Virus record (IMG/VR): IMGVR_UViG_3300032268_000986
Span: 62,001 to 126,000 of that record
Direction: 5' to 3' (one strand)
Length of the DNA stretch: 64,000 nt
The position numbers were made by a program, and so were the translations under genes. Shown here in pieces: positions 3,379 to 45,039 of this stretch; the first letter of the stretch is position 1; the number at the start of each line of letters is the position of its first letter. The notes under the pieces are model-generated. The model saw only the letters and a list, made by a program, of their open reading frames with translations. It searched no databases and was not told the origin of the DNA.

Positions 3379-4450
3379 GCATGCCCAGGAGCTCTTGCCA
3401 TAGTATCTTGGTCAGGCCACCGTTGTAGAAGTGATTGAAATTGTGTTCCACAATTTCAACGCAGGCCTGGTGTATGCGTTGACGTTCTTCAACGCCTAGA
3501 TTTTCTAGATGTTTCAACAACTGAGTGACCTTTTCCACTCGCAGTATGTCATCGGTTTCCAAGTCATAGCTCTCATCAAACACCGAGTCAAATGTGCGGA
3601 ACCCATATTCTCGCATGTAGGCCAGGCTGCCAGCAGGAGCCACCAACACAAACGGCATTTCCATGGCAATGGCCTTGAAGGTCTTTTCTGTGATGTGTGT
3701 GCGGCGTCCAAAGTACACAGTTTCAGTGGGCACGTATAGCAGGCTGTCGGCTGCTTCGTCGAAGTTTGTGAGCCAGCACGATGCCATTTGCTGAGTTTCT
3801 TCGCCGGGAAACAATTTAGGCAATGGCGCTGCCTCAAACACTTGCTCAATGTCGGGATATATGTTATTATACTTACGAGCTATCTCACTGATGTCGACAC
3901 CTTCATAGGTGCAGGTCCTAGGAGCTGATATCCAGTTGTGATCCAGCCCATGTTTGAATACATTATACAAGAACAACACACGATGATCACGCTTGCCGGC
4001 CACAATACGATTGGGACTCATAAAAGTCCGTGTGGGCTGCCGATCCCGTGCTCGAGGAATCAAGAAACTCTTGTCGTAGCCTCGAAACCAATCCTGACAG
4101 GCCCAACCATGATAAAAATAGTAATGTGGTGTCCAACCGTACACCCGACACATTTCTTCCACATGCTCGCCCTTTTCGCTAACTACTACATGACCTGGCG
4201 GTTGAACCCAAATATCATCGTTGCGGCGAATCACATCTTGAAACAACGGTTTGTGCAAGTCCATGTGAACAGGTTCTTGGTCATGCATGAATATATAATC
4301 AATTTCACGCACGTCGTCTCCGCCGTAGTTGAACAAACTTTCAGGATCACTACGTCCCGGGGGATCGCAAAAAAATACTCTAGTGCCCGGAACATGTCGT
4401 TGGATCCAGGGCCAAAATGTGTTGTTGTAAATTTCGTCAATTCTAATCAT
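3359..4450 (-). CDS. Putative glycosyltransferase (GT10-like ITEK motif family)
   Basis: HITEKTFKAI...YGFRTFD...ESYD block. Confidence 0.55.
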   Translation of the reverse strand: MIRIDEIYNNTFWPWIQRHVPGTRVFFCDPPGRSDPESLFNYGGDDVREIDYIFMHDQEPVHMDLHKPLFQDVIRRNDDIWVQPPGHVVVSEKGEHVEEMCRVYGWTPHYYFYHGWACQDWFRGYDKSFLIPRARDRQPTRTFMSPNRIVAGKRDHRVLFLYNVFKHGLDHNWISAPRTCTYEGVDISEIARKYNNIYPDIEQVFEAAPLPKLFPGEETQQMASCWLTNFDEAADSLLYVPTETVYFGRRTHITEKTFKAIAMEMPFVLVAPAGSLAYMREYGFRTFDSVFDESYDLETDDILRVEKVTQLLKHLENLGVEERQRIHQACVEIVEHNFNHFYNGGLTKILWQELLGMLDEFRV

Positions 4451-7400
4451 GTTTGATATATTTTATATTGGTAAGAAACCAAATCTATTTGCGCACGAAC
4501 AAGCTGTGGACAGTATTCAGCAGGCACAGCAACTGAGTCGCACACGTTTCTTCTGGATAGTCAACTACTTAGCGGTGCTGGATCACTGGGACTTTCTTTG
4601 GGAGCCTGCACCATGGCAAGCGCATCAACGACATGCCTGGCCTGATCAACATCAGCCTGATTCAGGAGTGTATCTGGTGCCCCGCACCTGGGACGGTCAG
4701 GAAACCAATTATCATGTTCATCCCCGGGTGTGCCATCGCACAGATCCAGAGTTCTGGCATGTACCAGACTGGATTGATCCTGCCAGCATTGACCAGACCT
4801 GGAGTCCAGATTCTGGCGCACCACCTTATATCTATGAGTTTCCCGTGGAATGGGGCTGGGACAGAGTGGGAGGTCCACAGTATTGCATGCCCGGTGCTAC
4901 CAACATCAAGTACATGGACAACTTTGTTGCTCGCACACAGCACACAGCTCTGCCCTGGTATCAACACTGTGCAGTAGAGTGGACTGATGATGTGCAGCGT
5001 TGGAGACCCAATCCTGCAGATCCTCCCTACAACTATGTGTTTGGTAACCAATGGTATTCAGCTGAAGTCATGCCCACTGTGGAGTACCGCATGCCCGGTG
5101 CAGTGAGCAAAAAGTACATGGATCTTCAAGTACGACTGCCCGAACATCATGACAATCGCTGGCACACTCTGTATGACTGTGAATGGGACTACAGCTGGGT
5201 TCCTGATCCCGGTGACCCGCCTTACATCTATGTGTGGGGCAACCAGTGGTGGAGTGCTGAAATCATGCCCACTGTGGAGTATCATGTGCCCGGCGCCACT
5301 GAACGCAAGTACATGACCTGGCCAGCCCGGCTATGCAAAGATCGCACCAACTGGCAAGTGCCCAACGGGGTTGACATCAACAGCATAGACTTTAGCTGGC
5401 AGCCTGATCCCGGTGACCCGCCTTACATATATGAGTTTGCTACTCAGTGGCAACCCACAGGCGGTGCTAGATATGTAGTACCCGGCGCCACTGAAGTCAA
5501 ATATGTGGACATACAGCATCAACGACTGAGTGATCGCACCAACTGGCAGGTGCCCAACGGGGTTGACATCAACAGCATAGACTTTTCCTGGCACCCAGAT
5601 GTCACTGAGCAACCTTATATCTATGAGTTTGCTACTCAGTGGCAGTCCAACGGTGGCGCACAATACACAGTGCCCGGTGCAACTGAACGCAAGTATGTGG
5701 ACATACAACACCGCAGGCTGGCTGATAGCACCAATTGGACTATTCCAGATTTTGTTGATGTTGACAGCATAGACTTTAGCTGGCACCCGGATGCTACAGA
5801 GCAACCCTATATCTATGAGTTTGCTACACAGTGGCAACCCACGGGTGGTGCTAGATATCATGTGCCGGGTGCGACTGAGCACAAGTATGTGGACATAGAA
5901 CATCGTAGGCTGGCTGATAGCACCAATTGGACAATCCCAGATCTAGTTGATGCCAACAGCGTGGACACATCCTGGCATCCCGGCAATACAGAACAGCCCT
6001 ATATCTATGAGTTTGCTACACAGTGGCAACCCACGGGTGGTGCTGTGTACACAGTACCAGGCGCAACAGAACGCAAGTATGTAGACATACAGCATCGTAG
6101 ACTACCTGACAAAACTGCGTGGACACTGTTGGAGGCTGTTGCTAGTTTTGATTACTCATGGCATCCGGACAACACTGAACCGCCTTACAACTATGTGTTT
6201 GGCAATCAGCACTGGCCGGCTACAGAAATGCCTACCACGGTGTACAAAATGCCAGACGCTGTGTCGGACAAGTTTGTGGATGTACTGGTTGCACGCCTGT
6301 GGGGTTGCATGGGCAACTGGGAGTTGTGTGAAGATATCGATGATGCCGCATGGGACTGGTCCTGGGTACCCAATCCCAAGGATCCACCTTACATCTATGT
6401 GTTTGGTAATCAATGGAATCCGCCTGAATTTAAAGCCAGTGTCAAATATCATGTGCCAGGTGCAACCGAAGTCAAATACATGGATCGTCGCACAACAAGA
6501 TTGCCTCAACCGCAGTTGTTTGCACACAACATTGCTGTGAGCAAGTTTGATTACTCGTGGGAACCAAATCCATTTGATCCACCGATGACGTATGTGTTTG
6601 GCAATCAATGGAACTCGGCTGTGCTAGAACCCACTGTGGTATACAATGCCGGAGGCACCGAAATCAAGTATGTGGATGACATCATTGCCACTGTGGCACA
6701 AGATGTCACTGCGTGGGAACTGCTAGACGATATTGAACAGTTTGATTACTCGTGGCGGCCCAATCCCAAGGATCCACCATATATCTATGTGTTTGGTAAT
6801 CAATGGCTGCGCCCTGAACAACGTCCTGCTCTGAAATATCATGTCGCTGGTGCAACTGAAATCAAATACATGGATCACCCACAAGCTCGCCGCAGAGGTG
6901 ATCACACAAGATTTCATCAGCACTGTGCTGTGGAGTTTGATTGGAGTTGGGAACCTGATCCAGGTGCGCCGGTCTACAACTATGTGTTTGGTAATCAGTG
7001 GCATTCGGCTGAGATCATGCCCACAGTTGAATATCGCATGCCCGGTGCCACCGAACGCAAATACATGCATGAGCCAACAGCCAAGTTACCTGAGAACCCT
7101 AACCGACCTTGGTACAATGTAGTTGAAAGCGACATGGATTATTCTTGGGTACCTGACCCAGGAGACCCTCCATACATTTATGTGTTTGGTAATCAATGGC
7201 ATGCTGCCGAAGTAATGCCCACTGTGGAGTATCGCATGCCCGGTGCCACCGAACGCAAATACATGGACTCACCAGTTGCTGAATTGTCGGCGGACATGAC
7301 ACACTGGTATGTGCCCGAACATGTTGATGTAACTGACATGGACTTTAGTTGGCAGCCTGATCCAGGCGAACCAGCCTACATCTATCAGTTTGCCACACAG

Positions 7401-27711: not shown

Positions 27712-28128
27712 TTATGCTACCTCATCTTTTTTATCACTGGGGAATTTTGCACTGGTGTATCGGATAACCAGTACACTGATGGCAATAACAAATGTGGACC
27801 CGGACACCGCCAGCATTTCACTAATGTTAATAGGCTGATGACTCATGATGTCTACCATGTGTCGGGTCAATGCCGTTATTGCTATGTAAAGTAGAAACCT
27901 AACAGGCATATGGTTGGTTTTAAAATAAATTCCAACCATGGCCCCTATTTCTAAATAGATAAACATCAGCAATAGGTCGCCAACTGTGGCATGGTGTTTC
28001 TGGAACATTTCAAAAAATGTCCATCCTGCGGCCCATACTGTTGCGGCGCCTATGCCAAAAAGTGCCAATCGATGGAATATATCAACTAGTGTATTTCCAA
28101 CTCGATCAACATTTTTTGTGTCTAACAT
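27712..28128 (-). CDS. Phosphate-starvation-inducible PsiE-like membrane protein
   Basis: DLLLMFIYLEIGAMVGIYFKTNHMPVRFLLYIAITALTR. Confidence 0.85.
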   Translation of the reverse strand: MLDTKNVDRVGNTLVDIFHRLALFGIGAATVWAAGWTFFEMFQKHHATVGDLLLMFIYLEIGAMVGIYFKTNHMPVRFLLYIAITALTRHMVDIMSHQPINISEMLAVSGSTFVIAISVLVIRYTSAKFPSDKKDEVA

Positions 28129-28688
28129 TACAGTGTCTCGCCACCAACTGTGCGGTTGCATGCACAAAGTTCGCCAGTTTGCAATGCGTCAAGAACACGG
28201 AGTGTTTCTTCTGGGCTACGACCCACGTTCAAGTTGTTGACAGTGACGTGTTGGATAACGTTGTCTGGGTCAACAATGAATGTGGCACGAAGTGCGGCAC
28301 CTGCTGGAGCATAGAACACGCCCAGTTGTTCGATCAAACTTACGCCACCGCGCTCTTCACCGGGTTGGTGACGAGCAGTGTCAGCAAACTGGTGATGTGT
28401 GATCTTACGCAAGTCATCGTGGCTCTTTTGCCATGCTACCTTGCAGAACTCGTTGTCTGTTGATCCTGTGAGCAACACTGCATCACGATCCGCAAAGTCC
28501 TGTGCCAGTTTGTCATAGGCCACAATTTCTGTGGGGCAAACAAATGTGAAGTCTTTGGGGTAGTATACAATTACTTTCCACTTGCCAGGGAAGCTGGTTG
28601 CAGTGATGTCATAAAATGCATCATCAGGTTGTCCAGGCTTGACGCCTGTGATTGTGAACGGGGTCAATTTATCGCCAACTGTTTTCAT
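28128..28688 (-). CDS. ahpC: Peroxiredoxin AhpC
   Basis: YPKDFTFVCPTE, RATFIVDP, VGRSPEE, GELC. Confidence 0.95.
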   Translation of the reverse strand: MKTVGDKLTPFTITGVKPGQPDDAFYDITATSFPGKWKVIVYYPKDFTFVCPTEIVAYDKLAQDFADRDAVLLTGSTDNEFCKVAWQKSHDDLRKITHHQFADTARHQPGEERGGVSLIEQLGVFYAPAGAALRATFIVDPDNVIQHVTVNNLNVGRSPEETLRVLDALQTGELCACNRTVGGETL

Positions 28689-28789
28689 AATTTCTCCTTG
28701 TGCTTGAAAACCAATAACTCTCAGTATAAACACTGATACGCTATTATAATAGTATGTATCAATGAAGTCAAGTGAAAAATAGAATTTTT

Positions 28790-28810
28790 GCTATTGTATT
28801 TTTCAATAGC
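28790..28810. promoter_or_regulatory. LysR/OxyR-type inverted repeat upstream of the ahpC promoter
   Basis: GCTATTG-N7-CAATAGC; promoter TTGACT-N17-TATAAT at 28743-28771 (minus). Confidence 0.45.
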
Positions 28811-28815
28811 AACCA

Positions 28816-29028
28816 TTAAACTTTTTTATAGGGAGGATCAGCAGTCCACACAGCAGGCGGTGTATTTAAAATTGGGTCAGGCACAAACGACGAGTGGGCG
28901 TTATCCAACAACGGATAACTGCCCACAAATTCTTTGACACAGGTATATGACAGCGGATTTGATGCTGGGCGTGATCCAACCCGGCGCAACCGTGCCATCA
29001 TTTCCTGATCACGTACTGAAAAGTCCAT
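28816..29028 (-). CDS. Hypothetical protein
   Basis: TAAATA 4 nt before ATG. Confidence 0.5.
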   Translation of the reverse strand: MDFSVRDQEMMARLRRVGSRPASNPLSYTCVKEFVGSYPLLDNAHSSFVPDPILNTPPAVWTADPPYKKV

Positions 29029-29039
29029 GCTGTATTTAA

Positions 29040-29115
29040 TGGTCTCACTGCCAGGACTTGAACCTGGATCTACTGCTTAGGAGGCAGTGGTTCTATCCAG
29101 TTGAACTACAGCGAG
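29040..29115 (-). tRNA. tRNA-Arg(CCT)
   Basis: Cloverleaf, ACTGC-CTCCTAA-GCAGT, encoded CCA. Confidence 0.92.
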
Positions 29116-29742
29116 TCAGCGCCAAAACGTACACACTTGACCATTGTGCTCGGCACGGATATTTGTGACATGGTCGTAGATCTTGTCAAAAATTGTAGAG
29201 TATGTTTTGGTTGTAAAATGTGGAGCCACTGATGTAAACACTATACCATGTGGGCTGTGTTGGGCAAGGGCCAACATGAGATGATTTTGCATGGCCTTGC
29301 CACCGGCATAGCCAGCTGCCCAGGTGCTGTAGTCTCTTTGGTGTTCCCATGACATACCCGAGGTCATGAATACAACACTGCTGCCTGGCTTCAAGTATTG
29401 CATTGCACACAGTGAGACGGCATGTGGTATTCCGGCATGTATTCTCACAGTGTCTTGCCAGGCATGTTCTTGATAATGCTGTGTGCCGTCAAAACATCCA
29501 GGTTGGTCAGGCCAGCTGGCGGCAGTGGTATTGTACAGCACCAGATCCAAGGGTATGGCAGCGGCCACGGACTGAAATTTATCAACCACATCTTGGGTAT
29601 TGCCAAAATTGGCAGTTATGCTGTGGGGATGATCACAGTGTGATATAGTGTGAACTGTGTGCCCTTGATTTCTGGCACGGCTGCAAAAATCAGGACCAAA
29701 TTTACCGGTTGGTCCACCTCCCCCAAAAACGCAAATGTTCAT
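29116..29742 (-). CDS. Short-chain dehydrogenase-like protein
   Basis: ICVFGGG..GKFG, YAGGK (YxxxK). Confidence 0.7.
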   Translation of the reverse strand: MNICVFGGGGPTGKFGPDFCSRARNQGHTVHTISHCDHPHSITANFGNTQDVVDKFQSVAAAIPLDLVLYNTTAASWPDQPGCFDGTQHYQEHAWQDTVRIHAGIPHAVSLCAMQYLKPGSSVVFMTSGMSWEHQRDYSTWAAGYAGGKAMQNHLMLALAQHSPHGIVFTSVAPHFTTKTYSTIFDKIYDHVTNIRAEHNGQVCTFWR

Positions 29743-29747
29743 GACTG

Positions 29748-29900
29748 TTAGCTGGGAATAAGTCTGGGAAGGTAAGGAACTGCACGTGGTCCGTAGCGGG
29801 ATTGCAGTAAGAGACGAGCCTCTTGGGCTGTTTGAGCACCCACACGGTCTTTGAATTCTTTGCCATCGGGTGTGCGTATAGTGGCTTCAAAAAGTTTCAT
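29748..29900 (-). CDS. 50-aa hypothetical protein (not in ORF track)
   Basis: MKLFEATIRTPDGKEFKDRVGA...; TAAATA 5 nt before ATG. Confidence 0.6.
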   Translation of the reverse strand: MKLFEATIRTPDGKEFKDRVGAQTAQEARLLLQSRYGPRAVPYLPRLIPS

Positions 29901-29913
29901 ACCACTATTTATA

Positions 29914-29988
29914 TGGCCGGCCCTGCAGGAATCGAACCCACACCGCTTGGTTCGAAGCCAAGCATTCTATCCATTGAACTAAGGGCCG
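29914..29988 (-). tRNA. tRNA-Arg(TCG)
   Basis: CTTGG-CTTCGAA-CCAAG, CCA end. Confidence 0.92.
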
Positions 29989-30005
29989 TGTTTGATAAGT
30001 AATTT

Positions 30006-30707
30006 ATGCAAACAATTTTATATATTCTCATTGTAACACACATTACCATTGCATGTGTTACGCTATTTTTACATCGAAGTCAAGCACACCGAGGAGTTGA
30101 GTTTCATCCTGTGGTGAGTCATTTCATGCGATTCTGGCTATGGCTAACGACTGGCATGGTCACTCGCCAATGGGTTGCCGTACACCGCAAGCATCATAGA
30201 TTTACCGAACAGGATGGTGATCCGCACAGTCCACATGTGCATGGTTTTTGGCGTGTGCTGTTCACAGGTGCAGGTCTGTACCACTTGGCCAGCAAGGACT
30301 CGGCCATGGTCACACAATACGGCGCAGGAACACCCGATGACTGGGTAGAGCGCAACATATACTCCAAACACAGCAAACTAGGTATCTTGCTCATGTTGCT
30401 GATAGACATGGTATTGTTTGGTTGGTGGGGGTTGGTGGTATGGGGCATACAAATGATATGGATCCCATTCTGGGCAGCAGGAGTTATCAATGGAATTGGA
30501 CACTGGACCGGATACCGTAATGGTATTACTAAAGATCATAGTCGTAATATTAGTCCACTGGGCATTGTTATTGGTGGCGAAGAACTACACAACAATCACC
30601 ACTTGGATCCAGCAAATCCTCGTCTCAGTCGTCGCTGGTTTGAATTTGATATAGGCTGGGCGTACATACGCCTGTTGAGTGTGCTGAGACTGGCACACAC
30701 GAGATAA
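30006..30707 (+). CDS. Delta-9 fatty acid desaturase
   Basis: His boxes HRSQAH, HRKHH, GEELHNNHH; TM segments. Confidence 0.93.
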   Translation: MQTILYILIVTHITIACVTLFLHRSQAHRGVEFHPVVSHFMRFWLWLTTGMVTRQWVAVHRKHHRFTEQDGDPHSPHVHGFWRVLFTGAGLYHLASKDSAMVTQYGAGTPDDWVERNIYSKHSKLGILLMLLIDMVLFGWWGLVVWGIQMIWIPFWAAGVINGIGHWTGYRNGITKDHSRNISPLGIVIGGEELHNNHHLDPANPRLSRRWFEFDIGWAYIRLLSVLRLAHTR

Positions 30708-32026: not shown

Positions 32027-32497
32027 CTATGCGGCTTGCAGACCTTTGAATCGGTCGGCAGCATAGCTGGCAGCAAATGCATAGGGCTTCACAAACGGAA
32101 TCACGTTGCATGTGCCTTTGATGTAGCCCACGGCCTGCGAAATCACACAGCTTGAGCCATGCATTTCGTCAGGGTTGATGTCCAGGTGAACTTCAACATC
32201 CCGACCTTCCAACACTTCGGCCAGTTTGAGATACAGTTCCGAAACCTTGTAGACTTCGGTCATGAGTCGCATGGCAGGCTTACCGGGTTTTTGATCCCAC
32301 ACCCGTTCACGCTGAACTTCGCCAAAGATTTTGCAACCATTGTTGCCGTTGATGTGAACCACAATGGCCAACACATAATCGGCCCACCACTCATTGTTGA
32401 TCTTGATACGTTCCGAGTCGCATCCAAGATAGATGCGAGTTTCGGGCGTTTGTGCCTCGATAAAAGTCTTGACTTCTTCTAGATTGAGCTTTTTCAT
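32027..32497 (-). CDS. RNase H-like YkuK (DUF458) family protein
   Basis: IYLGCDS, RLMTEV, EVHLDIN, KPYAFAASYAAD. Confidence 0.85.
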   Translation of the reverse strand: MKKLNLEEVKTFIEAQTPETRIYLGCDSERIKINNEWWADYVLAIVVHINGNNGCKIFGEVQRERVWDQKPGKPAMRLMTEVYKVSELYLKLAEVLEGRDVEVHLDINPDEMHGSSCVISQAVGYIKGTCNVIPFVKPYAFAASYAADRFKGLQAA

Positions 32498-34000: not shown

Positions 34001-34089
34001 TGGAGGAAGGCTAGTAGAATCGAACTCTATGCGCTTTCGCACACCTTCTGTTTTCAAGACAGAGTCAGGCCCAGCCTGATTAACCTTCC
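34001..34089 (-). tRNA. tRNA-Ser(TGA), atypical fold
   Basis: TCTGT-CTTGAAA-ACAGA, long variable arm, 5-bp D stem, U73. Confidence 0.75.
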
Positions 34090-34993: not shown

Positions 34994-35054
34994 ATGGATC
35001 GTAAAGAATTGTCTTTCACGTGCCATCCCTGACCATACGGGGTCAAGAATGACA

Positions 35055-35075
35055 CTAACGTTTGGCACGTTTCAT
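35055..35075 (-). CDS. Mini-ORF MKRAKR with strong SD
   Basis: AAGGAGA-acgac-ATG AAA CGT GCC AAA CGT TAG. Confidence 0.55.
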   Translation of the reverse strand: MKRAKR

Positions 35076-35098
35076 GTCGTTCTCCTTGTTTAAAAAAT

Positions 35099-36484: not shown

Positions 36485-36687
36485 CACACTCTTTGGAATG
36501 TGTGTATTAAAACAGACTGTATGCTTAGGGAATAACATTTCTGTCAAGCGACCGGCAACGGGTACGCAATCTGTTTTAATACGCTCGGATTTTTTTATGT
36601 ACAAGAACATAAGCCATCCCCGAGGCCGCCCATTTGAAGCATGTTTAGAGTGCGCTTCGGGATCTCGTTTCCCATGTACACTAAATG

Positions 36688-36720
36688 AAAAACCCTGGAG
36701 TTTTTAGTTCCAGGGTCTTT
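36688..36720 (-). terminator. Intrinsic terminator (putative attenuator)
   Basis: ACCCTGGA/TCCAGGGT stem followed by U tract. Confidence 0.75.
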
Positions 36721-36748
36721 TGAATTTTTCTTGAGTCAGTTAATCTAG

Positions 36749-36883
36749 TTAACCATCCCAACCTTCAAAGGACCCCGACACTCCTGGAATACTATTCAAG
36801 CCCGCAAAACCGCGTGACCAGACAGACGCTGTCTGGAGCATTGTGGATTTTGTCAGCAGTGAATGATTCGTTGTGTTCATCAT
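36749..36883 (-). CDS. 44-aa putative leader peptide MMNTTNHSLLTKSTMLQTASVWSRGFAGLNSIPGVSGSFEGWDG
   Basis: Starts about 7 nt after TTGACA-N17-TACAAT (36891-36919); its 3' end is complementary to the terminator 5' arm. Confidence 0.65.
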   Translation of the reverse strand: MMNTTNHSLLTKSTMLQTASVWSRGFAGLNSIPGVSGSFEGWDG

Positions 36884-36936
36884 AAGTCCTATTGTATAGT
36901 ATTTAGCAATTGTTGTCAACCACTAAAGTGTTTTAT

Positions 36937-37119
36937 TTATCCATTTGTAGTCATTGTGTATGTTTCACTCATGTGAACCATGTACGCACGACTGGTGTTT
37001 GTTTCGTTATGGCTCTTGATAAAATCTCGAGCCAAGGCCTCACTATCAAAATACACAGTGCCACCAACAGTCATGTCGGTTTCTCTTTGTTCGTTGACAA
37101 TAACAACTTTGTATTTCAT
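36937..37119 (-). CDS. Hypothetical protein
   Basis: 60-aa ORF after tRNA. Confidence 0.5.
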   Translation of the reverse strand: MKYKVVIVNEQRETDMTVGGTVYFDSEALARDFIKSHNETNTSRAYMVHMSETYTMTTNG

Positions 37120-37126
37120 AGTTAAT

Positions 37127-37202
37127 TGGTTGCGGGACTTGGATTCGAACCAAGGATGGCAAAGGCTTATGAGACCTCGCTAGTGACCAGACCTTCCCCG
37201 CG
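37127..37202 (-). tRNA. Initiator-like tRNA-fMet(CAT), atypical
   Basis: CGCGGGG...CCCGCAACCA with C1:A72 mismatch; weak D arm. Confidence 0.75.
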
Positions 37203-37227
37203 CTATTCAGTTACAGTTATTTATACA

Positions 37228-37305
37228 TGGAGTCTCGGGAGGGATTTGAACCCACGAATCAACGGATTTGCAATCCGAGCCATTGAGCCACTCTGGTACC
37301 GAGAC
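37228..37305 (-). tRNA. tRNA-Cys(GCA)
   Basis: CGGA-TTGCAAA-TCCG, U73. Confidence 0.92.
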
Positions 37306-37312
37306 ATTACCC

Positions 37313-37390
37313 TATATGTAAACACACTGTCATCACCACCATACTTCCACGTCTTACGGCAGATGTGTCTGTCCTGTGTGTTTACATATA
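37313..37390 (-). ncRNA. Candidate stem-closed small RNA
   Basis: Perfect 15-bp terminal inverted repeat TATATGTAAACACAC. Confidence 0.45.
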
Positions 37391-37401
37391 AGCATGTTGA
37401 A

Positions 37402-37623
37402 TTTGAGAGCCTACGCCGCTTTTATCGTAGATTTATTCAGGACTTACCGGCCGCCTAGCCTGACCTCGAGCACGATGGATATCACTTGGGCTTCGTCCAG
37501 CGTAGTCTCCTTTACAGACCTCCGCAGTTGCCCGCGGGTGGGAGTTGAACCCATTTGCCTTTTACTGCTTTGGTCCTTCGAAGAAACCTAGACAGCGTGA
37601 CTTCACTTGCTGACACTCTCAAA
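37402..37623 (-). ncRNA. Candidate structured ncRNA (~220 nt)
   Basis: TTTGAGAG/CTCTCAAA ends; T-loop-like TGGG-TTCAACT-CCCA; several hairpins. Confidence 0.55.
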
Positions 37624-37626
37624 ACT

Positions 37627-37702
37627 TGGCGGTCCTAGGGGGTAACGATCCCCACTCTTACGGCGTGACAAGCCGTCGTGCGTCCATGAACACTTTAGGA
37701 CC
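37627..37702 (-). tRNA. tRNA-Asp(GTC), atypical T loop
   Basis: ACGGC-TTGTCAC-GCCGT; T loop ATCGTTA. Confidence 0.85.
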
Positions 37703-37705
37703 AAT

Positions 37706-37856
37706 TTTTATAGTCAAGCACCGAGAATGCCAATTTAGGAGTCCGGTGCTTCCGTTCCAAAGCCGATGCAGTTATGTCAGGATCCGTTCCCGGCCGGTTG
37801 GACCCGAATAGTGTATGCGTCCATACACGATACCTTATCGATGCTTGACTATAAAA
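37706..37856 (-). ncRNA. Candidate stem-closed ncRNA (~150 nt)
   Basis: Perfect 15-bp terminal stem TTTTATAGTCAAGCA. Confidence 0.5.
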
Positions 37857-37860
37857 ACAA

Positions 37861-38062
37861 AAATGCTCTGCATCCCCCGGCGGTAATTGTAGTGCATCAT
37901 CTCTTGGATTTCTCCGCAATTCTCACACACCTTCCACCCGCTTCCCGACAGGGACCGTTATCGCATTGCCAGCGGCCTTTCGGTAAGAAGACTACCACCC
38001 TTGGCTATCACACCACTTCTCATCTTGCGGGTCACAATATCTGCTGATTAGGCAGAACGTTT
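37861..38062 (-). ncRNA. Candidate structured ncRNA (~200 nt)
   Basis: Terminal stem; long-range ACCCGC/GCGGGT pairing; GNRA-like loops. Confidence 0.55.
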
Positions 38063-38148
38063 TGGTGGAGACGGATGGATTCGAACCACCGCGCTTTTTA
38101 GGGGCCAGATTTACAGTCTGGTGCAATCAACCACTCTGCCACATCTCC
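38063..38148 (-). tRNA. tRNA-Tyr(GTA)
   Basis: CCAGA-CTGTAAA-TCTGG, variable arm. Confidence 0.94.
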
Positions 38149-38221
38149 AAAAAAGGTAGGATCACGGTTGCAGGACCTAGTGCTCTTGCGAGGAAGTATC
38201 CAGGCGATGTGATCCTAAAAA

Positions 38222-38297
38222 TGGTACACGATACGGGAATCGAACCCGTCTTACCAACGTGAAAGGCTGGTGTCCTAAACCGATAGACGAATCGTGC
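38222..38297 (-). tRNA. tRNA-Glu(TTC)
   Basis: CCAGC-CTTTCAC-GTTGG. Confidence 0.93.
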
Positions 38298-38300
38298 ATG

Positions 38301-38532
38301 CTATATGCAACCACATTAGGGAAGTTCTTGACACGCATCACCAACTTGCATCAAGACCTCATTACGGGCCTAGTAGTTCCGCCGCCTTCCTGGAGTTTGG
38401 TGTAGCCCTATCCCTCACGCTCGATGGTGTCTCGCGCTACTCTTAGGCCCTCCTGCTTCATGGGTATCCGGCTCGAATCAGCCTTTTGTTCACCCCTAAC
38501 GGACTAGGTAACCCTAATGTGTTTGCATATAG
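38301..38532 (-). ncRNA. Candidate stem-closed ncRNA (~230 nt)
   Basis: 20/21-bp terminal inverted repeat. Confidence 0.55.
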
Positions 38533-38572
38533 TAGCTGGGCAAACCCAGCACCATATGAAAATAACTGTAAC

Positions 38573-38584
38573 TTGTTAAAGAAC
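38573..38584 (-). promoter_or_regulatory. rrn-type boxA (Nus antitermination) site
   Basis: GTTCTTTAACAA, one mismatch to GCTCTTTAACAA, just downstream of TTGACC-N17-TATACT (38626-54). Confidence 0.65.
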
Positions 38585-38762
38585 TCTGGAACTAGTTGTG
38601 ATCAACTATTTCCTAACTAGCCACTAGTATAACATCATCTGCCATACCGGTCAACTTGTTTTGTAAAAGCCCCGCCTTGTTGCAGGGTCTTTACAAACTC
38701 AGCTGTCTTTCCCGACTTGTTTCTATTGTAACACTCTACTCAATTTTGGTCTAGCACTAAAA

Positions 38763-38790
38763 GAAAAACCCGCATCATGTGCGGGTCTTT
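38763..38790 (-). terminator. Intrinsic terminator (putative attenuator)
   Basis: ACCCGCA-CATGA-TGCGGGT then TTTTCTTTT. Confidence 0.8.
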
Positions 38791-38817
38791 GGTTGTTAGT
38801 ACTTTCTACTTAGGGTG

Positions 38818-38916
38818 TTACACCCGCTGTAACACCTGTACCGTTGACGATGGCTCGCAATCGCTCTCATAGGCTATTGCTGTCCAATAATTCAAGGTGA
38901 TTAGTTGTGTCATCAT
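38818..38916 (-). CDS. 32-aa putative leader peptide MMTQLITLNYWTAIAYESDCEPSSTVQVLQRV
   Basis: ATG about 7 nt after TAGACA-N17-TATAAT (38923-51); terminator follows. Confidence 0.62.
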   Translation of the reverse strand: MMTQLITLNYWTAIAYESDCEPSSTVQVLQRV

Positions 38917-38980: not shown

Positions 38981-40057
38981 TCAGAGATCCAACAACACAT
39001 GATGCTCGCTCACGCTGCCGATGTAGTCACACCGAACTTGGCTCTGGTTGAACCAACCAGGGTGCTGGTGTTGCAATAGGTCACAGTAGGCTTCAAACTT
39101 TGCCAATGTGGTTTGACCCTGGGAACTCAGCGCACAGTTATTGATCAACAGCAGTTCCTTGCGGTCAAATTGCCAGTCATGTTGATGTGACACTGTGCCA
39201 TTGATTCTTGGAAACCCCCACTTTTTATCCAGGCAGTTTCCTGGTGTGGGGAACCCCAAGGCAGCTTTGATGTCAAGCCCCTGCACTCCCTGTTGCGCAA
39301 GATCATGTAGGCCGTATGCATACGCAAACGCTAGGTTAGGGTTGCGTTGGTCACAGAAAAAGTGAATCATGCGAGGAGTCATGAAATTCAAATTGAACCG
39401 GTTGTCCATCCAGTAAAATTTGTTGCCATCTAACACTGGCATGGCAGCACCACCAACATTGACATAATTATCTTGTTGTAGATGTGGATAACACTCAATG
39501 GCCTGCAACGGGTTAGTGGTGCATGGGCGCAGTGTTTTGTGTCGCAACCACCGATGTTCTACATCTTCCATGTACCAAGCATAGTGCTCGGGCAAGATAT
39601 CATAGTACACCACTTGAGCTCGACTGCGGTATTGTTGCAGAGTCTTGGCCAGCACGGACCTAAAGGGAAACACATCAATTTCTATATTGACATACTCATC
39701 CACAGCACCAGGGAATCTACGATACACTGCAATTTCATCAACATCTGCCCCAGTTTCTAAAAATGCCATCAGGGCAGCATGACTGTCCATGCCACCGCTG
39801 TACCACAGGCGTATGCGACTGTGATGATCACGTATGAGTTGGGCCTGATCCAAGCACAGTTGCCAAAAAGTTTTTTGCGGTCGTAATCCGGCTAGGCTGT
39901 GGGACCAAACACGAAACCCCGGTGCGGCATGCCCCAGTTCTTGAGCTTTTCTCAGCGCATCAATCTTGCTGTGTCCATGCCATGTGCTCACATGGTAATG
40001 AGGTCCTGTGTAGCCCTGCCCTGGATCAATCTTTTCTGTGACTTTTACTGGTGTCAT
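38981..40057 (-). CDS. PP-loop (adenine nucleotide alpha-hydrolase-like) protein
   Basis: RLWYSGGMDS. Confidence 0.6.
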   Translation of the reverse strand: MTPVKVTEKIDPGQGYTGPHYHVSTWHGHSKIDALRKAQELGHAAPGFRVWSHSLAGLRPQKTFWQLCLDQAQLIRDHHSRIRLWYSGGMDSHAALMAFLETGADVDEIAVYRRFPGAVDEYVNIEIDVFPFRSVLAKTLQQYRSRAQVVYYDILPEHYAWYMEDVEHRWLRHKTLRPCTTNPLQAIECYPHLQQDNYVNVGGAAMPVLDGNKFYWMDNRFNLNFMTPRMIHFFCDQRNPNLAFAYAYGLHDLAQQGVQGLDIKAALGFPTPGNCLDKKWGFPRINGTVSHQHDWQFDRKELLLINNCALSSQGQTTLAKFEAYCDLLQHQHPGWFNQSQVRCDYIGSVSEHHVLLDL

Positions 40058-41355
40058 GAGTATAGTTGAATCAATCGATTCGTTATGCCATTGAGTTGAT
40101 TTTCTAACAGCAGCACCAGCACCAAGGGCATGAAATCCACTCGACGAGCTGTAATCCAGCCCACTGCACCACTGGCTGCAAACACCAGCATGTAGTACAG
40201 AGTCTGATCGCTACGCCAGCCCTGATACATCACAGTGGCAGTCAACAGCACAATCAACACTGATACTATGGCATTGTAGTACTGTTGGAACCAGCTCAGT
40301 AATTGTTTTACCACTGACGAGCACACCCAGGCCACAACAGCACATCCGATCAGTAAACTTGCAGTTACCAGGCCCACCATGTTCCAGTCAAGATTGGTGG
40401 CACGCCACCCATGACTGGCCAAGATATCCAATATCACCAACTCACTGGGCTGTACCGCTAGGCCCAACAACACAAACGGAATCAGGCTTGAAACCTGGCT
40501 GGCATTGTTGGCAGCTTCTGCAGCCGTGAGACGAGACAGACTGTCTGTGAGATGCGGTTGTTTGCGAAATCTTGATTCCACAGAGTGTGCCAAATTGGAT
40601 GTGATGATACCGCCCACGTATGGCACAAGCCCACACACAAATCCCACTGCACTGCCGCGCAGTGCAGATAGCCAGGCAAACGATCTTTGCGTGTGACCAT
40701 TGATGTCAATGGGCATGCCCATGGGGGATTGCTGGTGCTTGATCAACAGCATGGTGGGCACTGCATACACTCCCAGTATCACCGGGGTAATTGGTATGCC
40801 TCCGGCCAAGTACACATTGCCCAGAGTCAAAAAGTCCTGACCAGTCTGCATGTTGTGTCCTACTGCGCCTATAATCCAGCCCAGTGCAATCAACCCAAGA
40901 TTTATCATGGCTCTGTTGCCGGGCCATGCAGTGACAAATGTCAGTGTGACAAACAACAACACTGCCATGACTTCGGTTCTAAACAGCATGGGCCAGGCCT
41001 GTCCTTGGTGCAAGCAAATCAACATTGCGGAGAGACTCGCTGCCATGCCAATCAAGCTGGCTCGGGCAGTGTCTTTCAATGCTTGCTGGATAGCATTGTG
41101 ACCAATAATGATATTGCGTTCACGCAAGGCAGGTGCAGATGTTACTTCACCTAGAGTGCCAAAGCACAGCGCAGCCACTGATCCTGAAAAGTCTCGAGCC
41201 GAAATCATCACAGCGTAAAATGCAATCAACACAGCCGGACTCATCATGTTCAGCATGGGATACAGTATCAACAACATAAACACCGGACCCAGACCAGGCA
41301 TGAGCCCTACCAAGATTCCAATGGCTGGTGCCAACAGCAACAACAGCAGTTCCAT
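40054..41355 (-). CDS. Tripartite tricarboxylate transporter TctA-like permease
   Basis: GILVGLMPGLG, GFVCGLVPYVG, AAEAANNA; polytopic membrane protein. Confidence 0.82.
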   Translation of the reverse strand: MELLLLLLAPAIGILVGLMPGLGPVFMLLILYPMLNMMSPAVLIAFYAVMISARDFSGSVAALCFGTLGEVTSAPALRERNIIIGHNAIQQALKDTARASLIGMAASLSAMLICLHQGQAWPMLFRTEVMAVLLFVTLTFVTAWPGNRAMINLGLIALGWIIGAVGHNMQTGQDFLTLGNVYLAGGIPITPVILGVYAVPTMLLIKHQQSPMGMPIDINGHTQRSFAWLSALRGSAVGFVCGLVPYVGGIITSNLAHSVESRFRKQPHLTDSLSRLTAAEAANNASQVSSLIPFVLLGLAVQPSELVILDILASHGWRATNLDWNMVGLVTASLLIGCAVVAWVCSSVVKQLLSWFQQYYNAIVSVLIVLLTATVMYQGWRSDQTLYYMLVFAASGAVGWITARRVDFMPLVLVLLLENQLNGITNRLIQLYS

Positions 41356-43097: not shown

Positions 43098-43500
43098 GGT
43101 GGTTTCTGTTACGAGGTATTTCCTACCCTAAGCAGTGTTTAGGCTGCTAATGCGAACTGTGAGTCGTTTGCGTTTACTTTTTTGCTTGATTAACGGTCAT
43201 CGCCTACCGTGCTGTCCACTCTGTTACTTGTTGCCCTGTCGAAACTATGCAGGCCCATCATAAAGAAACTTCTTCAAATCTAGATGCCAAAAGCACAATA
43301 CGCAAACCGGCATCTGTTTGAATTACTACTCCATTACCCATGGTATAGACAATATCATAGTCTTTGCCAATTGTTAGTTCCTTATGCACAGCTTTAACAT
43401 CAGGTAATGATTTAAGTATCATAAACTTCCTTATGGTGGACCTGGGGGGATTCGCACCCCCGTCCAGAACACTGTTCTCATCACTTCATACAGCAATAAC
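43098..43500 (-). ncRNA. ssrA: Circularly permuted (two-piece) tmRNA, tag ANDSQFALAA
   Basis: Acceptor piece ending CAGGTCCACCA (43434) precedes 5' piece GGGCCTG...TTTCGAC (starts 43256); G3:U70; tag frame 43139-43171; outer ends approximate. Confidence 0.92.
43258..43422 (-). CDS. 54-aa ORF inside the tmRNA intervening segment
   Basis: SD AAGGA; MILKSLPDVKAVHKELTIGKDYDIVYTMGNGVVIQTDAGLRIVLLASRFEEVSL. Confidence 0.6.
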   Translation of the reverse strand: MILKSLPDVKAVHKELTIGKDYDIVYTMGNGVVIQTDAGLRIVLLASRFEEVSL

Positions 43501-43895: not shown

Positions 43896-44486
43896 TTAGT
43901 AACTGACCGATTGCCGGTCTGCCAGAGAAAATTCACCGTTTCTCACAAACGCAGTCAAGATCTGTTTGGTGCCAGCAGTGACCACTTCGCCTTGATGCAC
44001 CAAGGGATTGGCAACGTCATAATAATACACCAGAGCACTGCCACGCTTGGGCTGAATTCTTAAATTCAGCTTGGGAAAATAAGTGCAACCACCCTCAAAA
44101 TCATCATTGAGGTACATGATCATGCTGGCAATTCTTTGAGTCTGGAACCCACCAGTCAAGTCACTGTGGCAATTGAAGTAGTCGCCACTGCTGTACTTTA
44201 TCATGGGCAGTGGTTCAACATGACTCAGGGGCACCTTGAAAAAATTGGCCACTCGTTGAGCAACGGAATCAAAGTATTCATCACGGCCATATTCAATCCG
44301 GTGAGTCATGCACTGCCTGACAGGTCTAAGTTCCAACTCACCTGACCCAAGGCGAACCCGCCCGGGTACCAGGTCAAGCTCTTTGCTCAGGATCAGTTCA
44401 AGCTCGGTTGGACTCAACCAGTTATCATACTGTGCAATCCATGGCTGCTGACTGTACACCTTGGACGCCAACACATCAGGTGTCAT
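43896..44486 (-). CDS. Prolyl 4-hydroxylase-like 2OG-Fe(II) oxygenase
   Basis: HSD, MYLNDDFEGGCTYF, HQGEVV..G.K. Confidence 0.88.
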   Translation of the reverse strand: MTPDVLASKVYSQQPWIAQYDNWLSPTELELILSKELDLVPGRVRLGSGELELRPVRQCMTHRIEYGRDEYFDSVAQRVANFFKVPLSHVEPLPMIKYSSGDYFNCHSDLTGGFQTQRIASMIMYLNDDFEGGCTYFPKLNLRIQPKRGSALVYYYDVANPLVHQGEVVTAGTKQILTAFVRNGEFSLADRQSVSY

Positions 44487-45039
44487 CACTGTCAACCACC
44501 AACCAACCCAGCTGAAACAGATCCTGACGTACCTCGTCAGTGACCAGGCCCTCGCCCACATAGGCCTGGCATTCAAGATAATATTCTTTTTGGTCTTCGG
44601 TCAACTCAGCAAATTCTTGATCACTCAGCGGGCCTCCGCGTATGCCCGAACAGTACCATTCAATGTAGTCGCCCTTTTCCAGCATGTCAGCAACAATGCC
44701 TCCGGCATAGCGCCAGCTGCAACTCCAGGTCTGACTCTTTAACAGGGGCATGACCTCGTTGCGTTGAAAATCATTGTTGCACATGGCAGCATAGAGATTT
44801 TGAGCATACACATGACTGCTACGTGTCTTGGCCAAGATCCAGTCAGTGGTTCTCAAGTCCCACTCAAGGTTGTTTTTCTGCCACTCGGGATCTTGTTCCT
44901 GGGCCAGTCGGTCAAAGTCCATATCTTCAATCATTTTGATATAGTCCTGGTTGAGTTCTTGGTTGGTTTCGTCGCACCTTTCAACATACTTATCTCGTTG
45001 AAAGGTGTTACGCTCGGGGCTTCTTGAAAGTTTCAACAT
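44476..45039 (-). CDS. Hypothetical phage protein
   Basis: YAQNLYAAMCNN, WSCSWR motifs. Confidence 0.7.
   Translation of the reverse strand: MLKLSRSPERNTFQRDKYVERCDETNQELNQDYIKMIEDMDFDRLAQEQDPEWQKNNLEWDLRTTDWILAKTRSSHVYAQNLYAAMCNNDFQRNEVMPLLKSQTWSCSWRYAGGIVADMLEKGDYIEWYCSGIRGGPLSDQEFAELTEDQKEYYLECQAYVGEGLVTDEVRQDLFQLGWLVVDSDDT

Follow-up and report, generated by a model that had tools for sequence, protein, structure and literature searches.

Six conserved families of structured non-coding RNA interleaved with tRNA genes in the tRNA island of a freshwater jumbo phage

We analysed a window of 64,000 nucleotides (positions 62,001 to 126,000 of the virus record IMGVR_UViG_3300032268_000986) from the 343-kb genome of a freshwater jumbo phage; all positions given below are those of the window. 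Its tRNA island contains a train of five tRNA genes on the minus strand, namely tRNA-Met(CAU) (37127-37202), tRNA-Cys(GCA) (37228-37305), tRNA-Asp(GUC) (37627-37702), tRNA-Tyr(GUA) (38063-38148) and tRNA-Glu(UUC) (38222-38297), and six structured non-coding RNAs, E1 to E6, occupy the gaps among them. Over 37313-38532 the minus-strand order is E6, tRNA-Glu, E5, tRNA-Tyr, E4, E3, tRNA-Asp, E2, E1, tRNA-Cys. A terminal stem of 9-23 bp closes five of these spacer elements, all but E4, which is multi-domain instead. E2 and E4 begin one base past the CCA of the upstream tRNA, with zero spacer, and both zero-spacer junctions, CCA|E2 and CCA|E4, were found again in relatives. The 3′ ends of E6, E3, E1 and E5 lie only 2-8 nt from the following tRNA. 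As for the other 26 tRNAs of the island, most are 3-10 nt apart, without any E-type element.

E6 (38301-38532, minus strand) is a 232-nt RNA whose branched core, closed by a stem of 21-23 bp, is highly conserved. Homologues were found in 12 IMG/VR contigs by a 20-mer search and in 17 of 150 related loci by blastn, and their alignment gave 73 pairs with RNAalifold, 19 of which showed compensatory changes. In relatives, the closing stem is built by unrelated complementary sequences. Directly 5′ of E6, the sequence shows a leader hairpin (GCUGGG-UUUG-CCCAGC; 38535-38550, minus strand), and relatives also carry a hairpin at this position of the alignment. E1 (37313-37390, minus strand) is a 78-nt RNA closed as a hairpin by a stem of 15-17 bp; its 45-nt core is conserved (..GCCGUAAGACGUGGAAGUAUGGUGGUGAUGACAG..). 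Homologues of E1 were identified in locus L017 and in no fewer than 9 metagenome contigs, their closing stems of 13-20 bp covarying; the 16-mer metagenome scan returned mostly chance matches, and blastn filtering left only about 10 true homologues among 120 loci. E1 and E6 have in common a near-identical terminal repeat, CTATATGYAAMCACA, present at 4 sites of the window for 0.66 expected by chance, and the stem sequences of the two elements match in the phage genome studied. The position of E1 in this phage differs from its place in relatives. Incidentally, we noticed by eye an 8-nt complementarity between E5 (AUACUUCC) and E1 (GGAAGUAU), which we judged too short for interpretation.

E3 (37705-37857, minus strand) is a 153-nt RNA with a 21-23-bp closing stem around a core reading GGUAUCGU.., ..AUAACUGC.., ..CCUAAAU... 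A pattern search retrieved homologues from 20 contigs, and 47 of the 150 related loci carry one. Its inner pairs number 21, with 14 compensatory. The closing stem, 13-25 bp long, was present in 13 of 13 homologues and is built by at least five unrelated sequences. E5 (38157-38217, minus strand) is the smallest element, a 61-nt RNA with a variable 9-bp closing stem, invariant internal loops and P2 (AUCGCCUGGAUACUUCC ... CACUAGGUCCUGCAACC), and a variable hairpin whose loop is often of the GNRA type. It was found in 48 contigs by pattern search and in 67 of the 150 loci, and 11 of its 17 pairs are compensatory.

E4 (37863-38062, minus strand) is a multi-domain RNA of about 200 nt that has no terminal closing repeat. 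Its architecture combines three small hairpins on the 5′ side with a core of about 45 invariant nt (GGGUGGUAGUCUU..ACCnAAAGGCCGCUGGCAAUGCGA) and a long 3′ stem whose tip varies; the 3′ end, ..GCAGAGCAU, is conserved. Homologues came from 67 contigs in a 19-mer search and from 98 of the 150 related loci. The alignment supports 49 pairs, 26 of them compensatory, with 97.1% paired; the covariation score was 0.422 as compared with 0.163 in shuffles, none of 500 of which reached it, and slid controls stayed at or below 0.09. In the single-sequence fold (z = -0.42) the two ends of E4 pair with each other, but this is contradicted by 37 homologues, in which the 5′ end folds into a local hairpin of its own. 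Many of the covarying pairs switch among G-C, G-U and A-U, a pattern that works only on the tRNA-sense RNA.

E2 (37402-37623, minus strand) is a 222-nt RNA in which a 9-bp closing stem and a helix, P2, surround five hairpins. One hairpin is an anticodon-arm mimic with a 5-bp stem and the 7-nt loop CUUCGAA, another is T-arm-like (UGGG-UUCAACU-CCCA) and another carries a GNRA loop. Two alternative forms of the 3′ domain occur. We found E2 in 25 contigs with a 21-mer search and in 35 of the 150 related loci. Covariation analysis gave 44 pairs, of which 9 compensatory, with 98.7% paired and a score of 0.197 against 0.109 in shuffles (0/500). The CUUCGAA loop is identical to the anticodon loop of the phage's own tRNA-Arg(UCG), and 19 of 20 E2 copies keep it while its stem covaries. 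The case for tRNA-Arg mimicry is based on this one hairpin and a 4-bp T-arm only, and we hold it with little confidence. The UUCGAA of the loop is also palindromic, and dimerisation remains a possible alternative to mimicry. A genome-wide scan of 185,579 species recovered E2 in only 3 MAG contigs, which are themselves phage-like tRNA arrays. As these were the sole matches, E2 is not cellular.

A first-pass annotation, made without database searches, had described the spacers as ORF-free elements bounded by inverted repeats. The second part of this description held for five of the six. The 15 bp claimed for 37313-390 were found at 37313-27/37376-90 (15 nt, 100% complementary; 17 bp as RNA), the repeat bounding 37402-623 is a 9-bp stem (37402-10/37615-23), the 9 bp of 38157-217 pair 38157-65 with 38209-17 (9 nt, 100%), and the 20/21 bp of 38301-532 correspond to 38301-21/38512-32 (21 nt, 95%). 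For 37706-856 the repeat proved longer than the 15 bp proposed, extending over 37705-27/37835-57 (23 nt, 91%). The claim failed for 37861-38062, that is, E4, where the homologues show the local 5′ hairpin described above. The absence of ORFs held in substance. The ORF listing shows ORFs of 44-110 aa throughout the region, which are attributed to chance, and internal gaps among homologues were mostly of lengths that are not multiples of three (134 of 144 in E2, 237 of 276 in E4 and 21 of 22 in E6). We used this indel phase as the coding test, a stop-free-stretch test being uninformative at such short lengths. Substitutions in the elements compensate pairs and do not follow codon periodicity. 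Folding z-scores against shuffles were -4.95 for E3, -3.78 for E5, -3.13 for E1, -2.67 for E6, -1.03 for E2 and -0.42 for E4. Because the last two values are weak, single-sequence folding alone is insufficient to validate E2 or E4; the comparative data do so.

Members of the six families turn up in the tRNA islands of dozens of uncultivated phages, most of them from freshwater, E2 to E6 each being present in 17 to 98 of the 150 related loci. All 353 element matches in these loci lie on the tRNA strand (353/353). A conserved order emerges, ...E0 [E6] Glu/Asp E5 Tyr E4 E3 Asp E2 Cys Met..., and the elements prefer the company of Asp, Glu, Tyr and Cys tRNAs; in different phages the modules adjoin different tRNAs, or have no tRNA on one side. 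Each of E2 to E6 is single-copy in the 343-kb genome. It should be kept in mind that homologues were gathered by exact core motifs, which inflates the apparent invariance of the cores but not the covariation of the flanking helices. Collectively, the data show families that many uncultivated phages have conserved, that evolve by compensatory changes and lie always on the tRNA strand, and that are absent from Rfam.

Upstream of the train, an intrinsic terminator (38764-38790, minus strand; 11-bp stem, then a T run) marks the end of the preceding protein gene at 38981-40057. It forms the first part of a cassette, E0 (38607-38795), and its covarying stem is kept in 15 relatives. E0 was found in 25 or more loci and we considered it as a seventh RNA, but rejected it, the alignment showing a terminator followed by tandem promoters. 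The first of these, P1 (38725-38753, minus strand), is of the sigma-70 type (TAGACC-17-TACAAT, with an extended -10 TG), and its -35 and -10 hexamers are conserved alignment columns. The second, P2 (38626-38654, minus strand), reads TTGACC-17-TATACT with TG and matches at 10 of 12 positions; the 15 relatives keep TTGAC and TGTTATACT almost unchanged. The RNA operon is likely to have P2 as its main promoter, with transcription predicted to start near 38619. No minus-strand terminator was found between 38760 and 37100. The first one downstream on the tRNA strand (36692-36716, minus strand; stem ACCCUGGA..UCCAGGGU then UUUUUCAUUU, the covarying stem being conserved) probably ends the transcription unit.

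We then looked at RNA abundance in lake metatranscriptome contigs. In run X17, E2-like sequences reached depths of 25,000-59,000 (maximum 59,448) and E4-like sequences 2,000-4,600 (maximum 4,597), whereas adjacent tRNAs gave 12-60 and the protein genes on either flank 0. E2- and E4-like RNAs were 100- to 1000-fold above adjacent tRNAs and elements. DNA run X5 covers the flanking protein-coding DNA at about 15x; together with the zero RNA depth on the flanks, this rules out DNA carry-over as the source. RNA depth was low on E1, E3 and E6 (0-145), and these may therefore be unstable or merely cis-acting. RNA-library contigs bridged the Asp|E3, E3|E4 and E4|Tyr junctions. The RNA data are Logan contigs, which give neither ends nor strand nor true level, and the depths sum related phages. 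At this contig level, E2- and E4-like RNAs do reach very high levels in lake metatranscriptomes.

The reading that we favour, with a probability of roughly 0.78, is that of one polycistronic tRNA/ncRNA operon releasing stable RNAs, it being understood that the RNA ends, the processing and the function are inferred. The first-pass annotation had proposed such an operon, with tRNA processing liberating several small RNAs. The operon was consistent with every test run, and release as discrete RNAs is supported by the E2/E4 RNA excess, together with the absence of any depth on the protein genes at the flanks, the ends and enzymes remaining inferred. In this view, a Rak2-like freshwater jumbo phage would carry, on the minus strand from 38654 to about 36690, a single RNA operon that is early and strongly promoted and in which six independent structured RNAs, each its own conserved family, alternate with tRNAs. 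The host tRNA-maturation machinery would cut the primary transcript. RNase P, acting at the 5′ end of the downstream tRNA, would set the 3′ side of E6, E5, E3 and E1 and leave tails of 2-8 nt. The 5′ side of E5, E4 and E2 would be set as the upstream tRNA, with its encoded CCA, is matured at its 3′ end, first by an RNase E-type cut within the A/U-rich junction and then by exonucleases. RNase III may also act on E1, E3 and E6 through their stems of 17-23 bp. Closing stems would let each module fold apart from its neighbours and would block 3′-to-5′ exonucleases, yielding discrete stable RNAs. Genes for RNase III and a CCA-adding enzyme were not found in the phage genome, and Ro/TROVE (PF05731; control genomes positive) and RtcB are also absent from it, so processing would rely on the enzymes of an unknown host. 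The island does encode an RNase H-like protein (32027-32497). As to their role, the RNAs might act in trans by binding host or phage factors during infection, and E2 might mimic the anticodon arm of tRNA-Arg(UCG) together with a T-arm and so titrate a tRNA-binding protein; both proposals are inferences of low certainty.

An alternative that we regard as unlikely is that the elements act purely in cis, either as processing sites (RNase III or RNase E entry) or as insulators of tRNA folding, and are then discarded. The long perfect stems (17-23 bp) of E1, E3 and E6 do resemble the RNase III sites flanking rRNAs, little RNA depth was seen on these three elements, and the preferred association with Asp, Glu, Tyr and Cys tRNAs would fit as well. 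However, the cores exceed what a cleavage site needs, as illustrated by the 45-nt invariant block of E4 and the five-hairpin junction of E2, and E2 and E4 exceed by 100- to 1000-fold the tRNAs that they would supposedly serve. Moreover, the modules sit beside different tRNAs, or lack one on one side, across phages, and most of the other 26 island tRNAs, 3-10 nt apart, do without such an element. It could also be argued that these are MITE-like mobile DNA elements inserted between tRNA genes, whose repeats act at the DNA level. Terminal inverted repeats at the bounds, the one repeat sequence common to E1 and E6, the shuffled order of elements among phages and the different placement of E1 in relatives would speak for it. 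Yet the elements (E2 to E6 examined) are present in a single copy in the 343-kb genome and no target-site duplications were seen. The stems stay paired via strand-specific G-U intermediates while internal helices covary too, all 353 matches are on the tRNA strand, and RNA levels are high. We thus consider this possibility very unlikely.

Two further readings invoke known RNAs, and there is very little to recommend either. E2, and perhaps other elements, might be tRNA genes that are aberrant or have decayed, or else tRNAs carrying large insertions, given the T-arm-like hairpin, the perfect tRNA-Arg(UCG) anticodon loop and the weak scores of E2 against tRNA-Sec (13 bits) and a Tymovirus tRNA-like element (11 bits). 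But E2 lacks a CCA, a D-arm and an acceptor stem next to its T-arm, and purifying selection maintains its whole 222-nt design, including hairpins foreign to tRNAs, in 35 or more loci. ARAGORN, in default mode or relaxed with introns, detected no tRNA in E2, E3, E4 or E6, and the Rfam tRNA model matches no element. Alternatively, the elements could be divergent pieces of GOLLD or ROOL, large phage RNAs in which tRNAs may lie within the variable half. In favour of this, they share one genomic niche, tRNAs can be embedded in GOLLD linkers (PMC12286853), and GOLLD itself occurs in the islands of 18 of the 150 related freshwater phage loci (202 bits in L017 and 199 bits in L035, which served as a positive control). 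Against this, the window contains no match to GOLLD (RF02032, at least 150 bits), nor any GOLLD or ROOL match even at E up to 5-10, and the L017 GOLLD compared by blastn with the 343-kb genome gave chance matches only. In GOLLD-bearing relatives, the E elements are elsewhere in the island, in variable order.

Returning to the operon reading, a bolder and rather improbable version of it is possible, in which the tRNA island would be an RNA-based counter-defence or host-takeover island and the six RNAs trans-acting decoys or scaffolds. The super-abundant E2, through its mimicry of tRNA-Arg(UCG) anticodon arm and T-arm, would then titrate a host tRNA-targeting nuclease or a tRNA-modifying or -charging enzyme or, alternatively, self-assemble via its palindromic UUCGAA loop, as GOLLD and ROOL do. 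If this were true, the remaining families would add further functional RNA classes, as yet undescribed, to those of freshwater phages. It is now recognised that the tRNA islands of phages are counter-defence loci, and they also harbour GOLLD and ROOL; our data reveal that the same islands, in widespread freshwater phages, hold at least six additional structured RNA families. Their size of 60-230 nt makes biochemistry and structure work far easier than with GOLLD or ROOL, and E2 offers a concrete, testable hypothesis of tRNA mimicry. The families would also be new entries for RNA databases and markers for a large clade of uncultivated phages.

The first-pass annotation had suggested checking Rfam, including phage motifs such as manA, and would have been weakened had the elements proved unconserved. 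They are conserved, as reported above. The Rfam check was negative: with Rfam 15 (4227 families, among them manA, wcaG, GOLLD, ROOL, Y RNA-like, 6S, RNase P, SRP, self-cleaving ribozymes and riboswitches) at the gathering threshold, the window yielded only tRNAs and tmRNA, and relaxed searches of each element (E up to 5-10) returned noise only (tRNA-Sec at 13 bits, Tymo_tRNA-like at 11, sR18 at 15 and generic miRNA hairpins). The elements therefore match no Rfam family; the supplement of a 10,006-csRNA catalogue (PMC10690425) was outside this comparison. A blastn search of 37100-38700 against 50,697 deposited GenBank phage genomes gave tRNA-Tyr matches only, the elements being absent at that sensitivity, and no locus was found to be related via the flanking 358-aa protein.

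Several known systems nevertheless bear comparison. GOLLD and ROOL are phage- or prophage-encoded RNAs of unknown function, "often near tRNA islands" (PMC12286853). The E elements are like them in tRNA-island location, extensive covariation-backed structure and lack of coding capacity. They differ in being 60-230 nt long instead of about 580-800 nt, and in being separate modules that are mostly individually stem-closed (E4 is not). GOLLD and ROOL self-assemble, a property for which the palindromic E2 loop is the sole hint among the E elements. YrlA has a closing stem formed from its 5′ and 3′ ends and a tRNA-like module with a T-arm, two features shared with E2, but E2 is about twice as long, carries the anticodon-arm mimic and has no Rfam match. 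A Y-RNA identity was rejected on the ground that the phage has no Ro/TROVE or RtcB gene, although a host-encoded Rsr is not excluded. Ribosomal RNA operons are polycistronic units of stable RNAs in which long stems of 5′ and 3′ sequences enclose each RNA, with tRNAs between them. The proposed E operon is like them in layout, but its enclosed RNAs have no SSU, LSU or 5S matches. Phage T4 encodes rnaC and rnaD (species 1 and species 2), stable RNAs of 139 and 119 nt on the tRNA strand directly after tRNA-Arg, to which, to our knowledge, no function has been assigned. Searching the T4 tRNA region by nhmmer with the E2 to E6 alignments (E up to 1) gave no rnaC or rnaD match. The T-arm of rnaC is accompanied by an acceptor-like closing stem, whereas that of E2 is internal and accompanied by the anticodon-arm mimic. 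The E elements are similar to rnaC and rnaD in lying on the tRNA strand within the cluster, with 0-8 nt junctions, a shared promoter and no internal terminator; but where T4 has two RNAs appended after its tRNAs, the phage studied here has six families interleaved with them.

Six spacer elements of the tRNA island, E1 to E6, are conserved, structured and non-coding, lie on the tRNA strand and share one conserved promoter, and two of them, E2 and E4, are massively accumulated as RNA. All are on the minus strand. E6 (38532-38301) comes first in the train and is followed by tRNA-Glu; E5 (38217-38157) sits between tRNA-Glu and tRNA-Tyr, E4 (38062-37863) between tRNA-Tyr and E3, E3 (37857-37705) between E4 and tRNA-Asp, E2 (37623-37402) between tRNA-Asp and E1, and E1 (37390-37313) precedes tRNA-Cys and tRNA-Met. 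The inverted repeats listed by the first-pass annotation exist: the terminal repeats are 15 nt and perfect in E1 (17 bp as RNA), 23 nt in E3 (91%), 9 nt and perfect in E5, and 21 nt in E6 (95%), and the closing stem of E2 is 9 bp. Its view that the listed elements are bounded by inverted repeats failed for E4 only, whose ends are unpaired in the comparative structure. Single-sequence folds beat shuffles for E3, E5, E1 and E6 (z -4.95 to -2.67), and those of E2 and E4 were no better than shuffles. E2 and E4 each start with the base right after the CCA encoded by the preceding tRNA gene, and gaps of 2-8 nt separate E6, E3, E1 and E5 from the next tRNA.

Comparative evidence for structure was obtained for all elements. 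E4 (37 non-redundant copies) has 49 pairs, and double changes that compensate each other occur in 26 of them; paired cells made up 97.1%, versus 83.1% in shuffles, and the covariation score of 0.422, versus 0.163 in shuffles, was reached by 0 of 500 shuffles. When partners were slid by 1-3 columns as a control, covariation was at most 0.09. It has three small hairpins on the 5' side, a block of about 45 nt that does not vary and, on the 3' side, a long stem with a tip of variable length. E2 (20 copies) has 44 pairs, 98.7% paired, with a covariation of 0.197 versus 0.109 in shuffles (0/500 reach it). Five hairpins are enclosed by its closing stem together with a second helix. One hairpin, a 5-bp stem with the 7-nt loop CUUCGAA, sits on another covarying 5-bp helix; one, UGGG-UUCAACU-CCCA, matches the T-loop consensus; one is GNRA-capped; and there are two others. 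The CUUCGAA loop is identical to the one that carries the anticodon in the phage's own tRNA-Arg(UCG) and is retained in 19 of the 20 copies, while its stem alternates between GGU/ACC and GUA/UAC; within it, UUCGAA is self-complementary. The 3' third of E2 occurs in two unrelated versions.

In E5, 11 of 17 pairs were compensatory, the internal loops being invariant and the closing stem freely variable. Compensatory changes were also seen in 19 of 73 pairs in E6, whose 23-bp closing stem was swapped for unrelated complementary sequences in three lineages, and in 14 of the 21 inner pairs of E3. A closing stem of 13-25 bp was found in all 13 E3 homologues tested, with at least five unrelated sequences. 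E1 has a 45-nt conserved core and covarying stems of 13-20 bp. In relatives, E1 immediately follows F1, a conserved element downstream of tRNA-Met; here, just a remnant of the E1 stem lies beside F1 (36560-36575), the core (37313-37390) is found between E2 and tRNA-Cys, and its stem duplicates that of E6. This displacement and copying suggest recombinational shuffling of modules. We also spotted by eye an 8-nt complementarity, too short for interpretation, between an invariant E5 segment, AUACUUCC (38157-38217), and a conserved E1 segment, GGAAGUAU (37313-37390).

Exact motifs were found by IMG/VR scan in 67 contigs for E4, 48 for E5, 25 for E2, 20 for E3, 12 for E6 and 2 for E1; a metagenome scan added at least nine true homologues of E1. 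By blastn against 150 fetched related loci, E4 was matched in 98, E5 in 67, E3 in 47, E2 in 35 and E6 in 17, and 353 of 353 element matches were co-oriented with the local tRNAs. Most alignment-internal gaps were not multiples of three. On contigs of 5-350 kb, a recurring order was met, arg, leu, E0 (the conserved block upstream of E6), [E6], glu/asp, E5, (glu), tyr, E4, E3, asp, E2, cys, met, F2, F1, ala, trp; it is imperfect, some contigs lacking a module or having one relocated. At the sensitivity of blastn, none of E1-E6 was found in the 50,697 phage genomes from GenBank. A pattern scan for E2 across 185,579 species, one genome each, returned three contigs only, phage-like arrays of 20-21 tRNAs binned into MAGs of Haliscomenobacter, Crocinitomicaceae and Kapaibacterium.

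Transcription signals flank the train. The E0 block (38607-38795), conserved in at least 25 loci, was rejected as an RNA gene, its conserved columns being a terminator hairpin (minus, 38790-38764), a first -35/-10 pair, T(A/T)GACC-17-TG(n)TAYAAT (minus, 38753-38725), a hairpin between the two promoters, and a second pair, TTGACC-17-TGTTATACT (minus, 38654-38626). Both promoters are of sigma-70 type and in tandem. A possible operator is the short palindrome ACTAGnnnCTAGT, which overlaps both the second -10 element and the start site. After this block, no minus-strand terminator was found before 36716-36692, which is conserved and has a covarying stem. The element F2 (about 36723-36884) is preceded by a strong promoter of its own (36919-36891, 11/12 matches) and, with this intrinsic terminator, resembles a stand-alone sRNA gene. 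F1 (36572-36690) forms two hairpins, and 12 of their 20 pairs show compensatory changes. Together (36572-36928) they are conserved in 13-30 loci.

Abundance was assessed by mapping Logan contigs, from three metatranscriptomes and a single metagenome, onto 36900-38900; from such contigs neither RNA ends nor strand can be read, and the level only roughly. In X17, a lake-water RNA run, summed depth was 25,073-59,448 over E2 (37436-37636), 2,086-4,597 over E4 (37905-38038), 12-62 over the tRNAs, E3 and E5, and 0 over E1, E6 and flanking protein-coding DNA. A second RNA run, X15, gave the same profile (E2 681-889, E4 67-215). The DNA run X5 covered the whole region at about 5-130x, which excludes both DNA carry-over and a mapping artefact as the source of the RNA peaks. 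Identity of the RNA contigs to the window was about 85-100%, so they derive from this phage and its relatives; some span the Asp/E3, E3/E4 and E4/Tyr junctions.

The source record is 342,865 bp (CheckV completeness estimate 99%), and many freshwater and lake metagenome studies contributed the DNA runs that contain the window. One structural protein shares about 30% identity with proteins of Rak2-like jumbo myoviruses (about 345-380 kb). All 33 ARAGORN tRNAs of the window and a permuted tmRNA are on the minus strand, and E1-E6 lie in the largest tRNA island, at its promoter-proximal end. The two-piece tmRNA (43139-43495; tag ANDSQFALAA) has likewise permuted, beta-type counterparts in relatives, and could be a clue to host lineage. 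An Rfam "tRNA-Sec" match at 34005-34089 (48 bits, cut-off 47), missed by ARAGORN, is a type-II tRNA; its anticodon loop is CUUGAAA, its variable arm is long, and it is most likely tRNA-Ser(UGA). Inside the island, a 156-aa protein (32027-32497, minus) with Pfam PF04308 (RNase H-like, DUF458/YkuK) is present in 24 related loci, the six best-listed copies being 80-87% identical; it is a candidate island-specific nuclease. The spacer between tRNA-Arg(ACG) and tRNA-Lys(CUU) (34994-35098), conserved in 24 loci, carries AAGGAG, a mini-ORF of 6-7 codons (MKR(S)GKR / MKRGKL) and then a conserved hairpin, and may be a leader peptide or translated regulator. Auxiliary-metabolic-type genes surround the island (27712-30707, 40054-41355, 43896-44576): PsiE, AhpC/peroxiredoxin, fatty-acid desaturase, a TctA-family transporter and 2OG-Fe(II) oxygenase.

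Overall, the finding of the first-pass annotation, a dense train of ncRNA candidates interleaved with tRNAs, was real and well read. Its suggestion that tRNA processing liberates the small RNAs stands as an inference: we infer that RNase P would free the downstream side of each element and tRNA 3'-end maturation the upstream side; long stems might be cut by RNase III, and closing stems would act as folding insulators and exonuclease blocks. The phage encodes no RNase III, CCA-adding enzyme, Ro or RtcB. The function of the six RNAs is unknown; the best concrete lead, an inference, is that E2 mimics the tRNA-Arg anticodon arm and T-arm and, if so, would serve to decoy or titrate some factor that binds tRNA. 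Alternatively, E2 might associate with itself via the palindromic loop. As to what the elements are, each of four rival readings conflicts with one or more direct tests: purely cis-acting processing signals, MITEs, decayed tRNAs and fragments of GOLLD. E2-E6 are present in one copy each in the genome. No Rfam family was matched by any of E1-E6 at the gathering threshold, nor in element-sized searches with E up to 5-10. GOLLD is absent from this phage's genome and has no overlap with the elements.

The reading of E1-E6 as island-encoded small RNAs finds parallels in known systems. GOLLD and ROOL are phage RNAs "often near tRNA islands", of unknown function (PMC12286853). GOLLD is a genuine neighbour, found in homologous tRNA islands of 18 of the 150 related loci (the close relatives L167 and L157 among them) and scoring 199-202 bits in L017 (1864-2326, with an embedded tRNA) and L035 (11181-11645). 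T4 rnaC and rnaD occupy a comparable place, following tRNA-Arg, and a T-arm is present in rnaC; their similarity to E2-E6 was undetectable. The full-text literature searched did not describe the E1-E6 RNAs; some of their motifs may already be among the 10,006 candidate structured RNAs catalogued from IMG/VR in 2023 (PMC10690425). E1-E6 are new RNA families of a known kind, the phage tRNA-island RNAs, alongside T4 species 1 and 2, GOLLD and ROOL.
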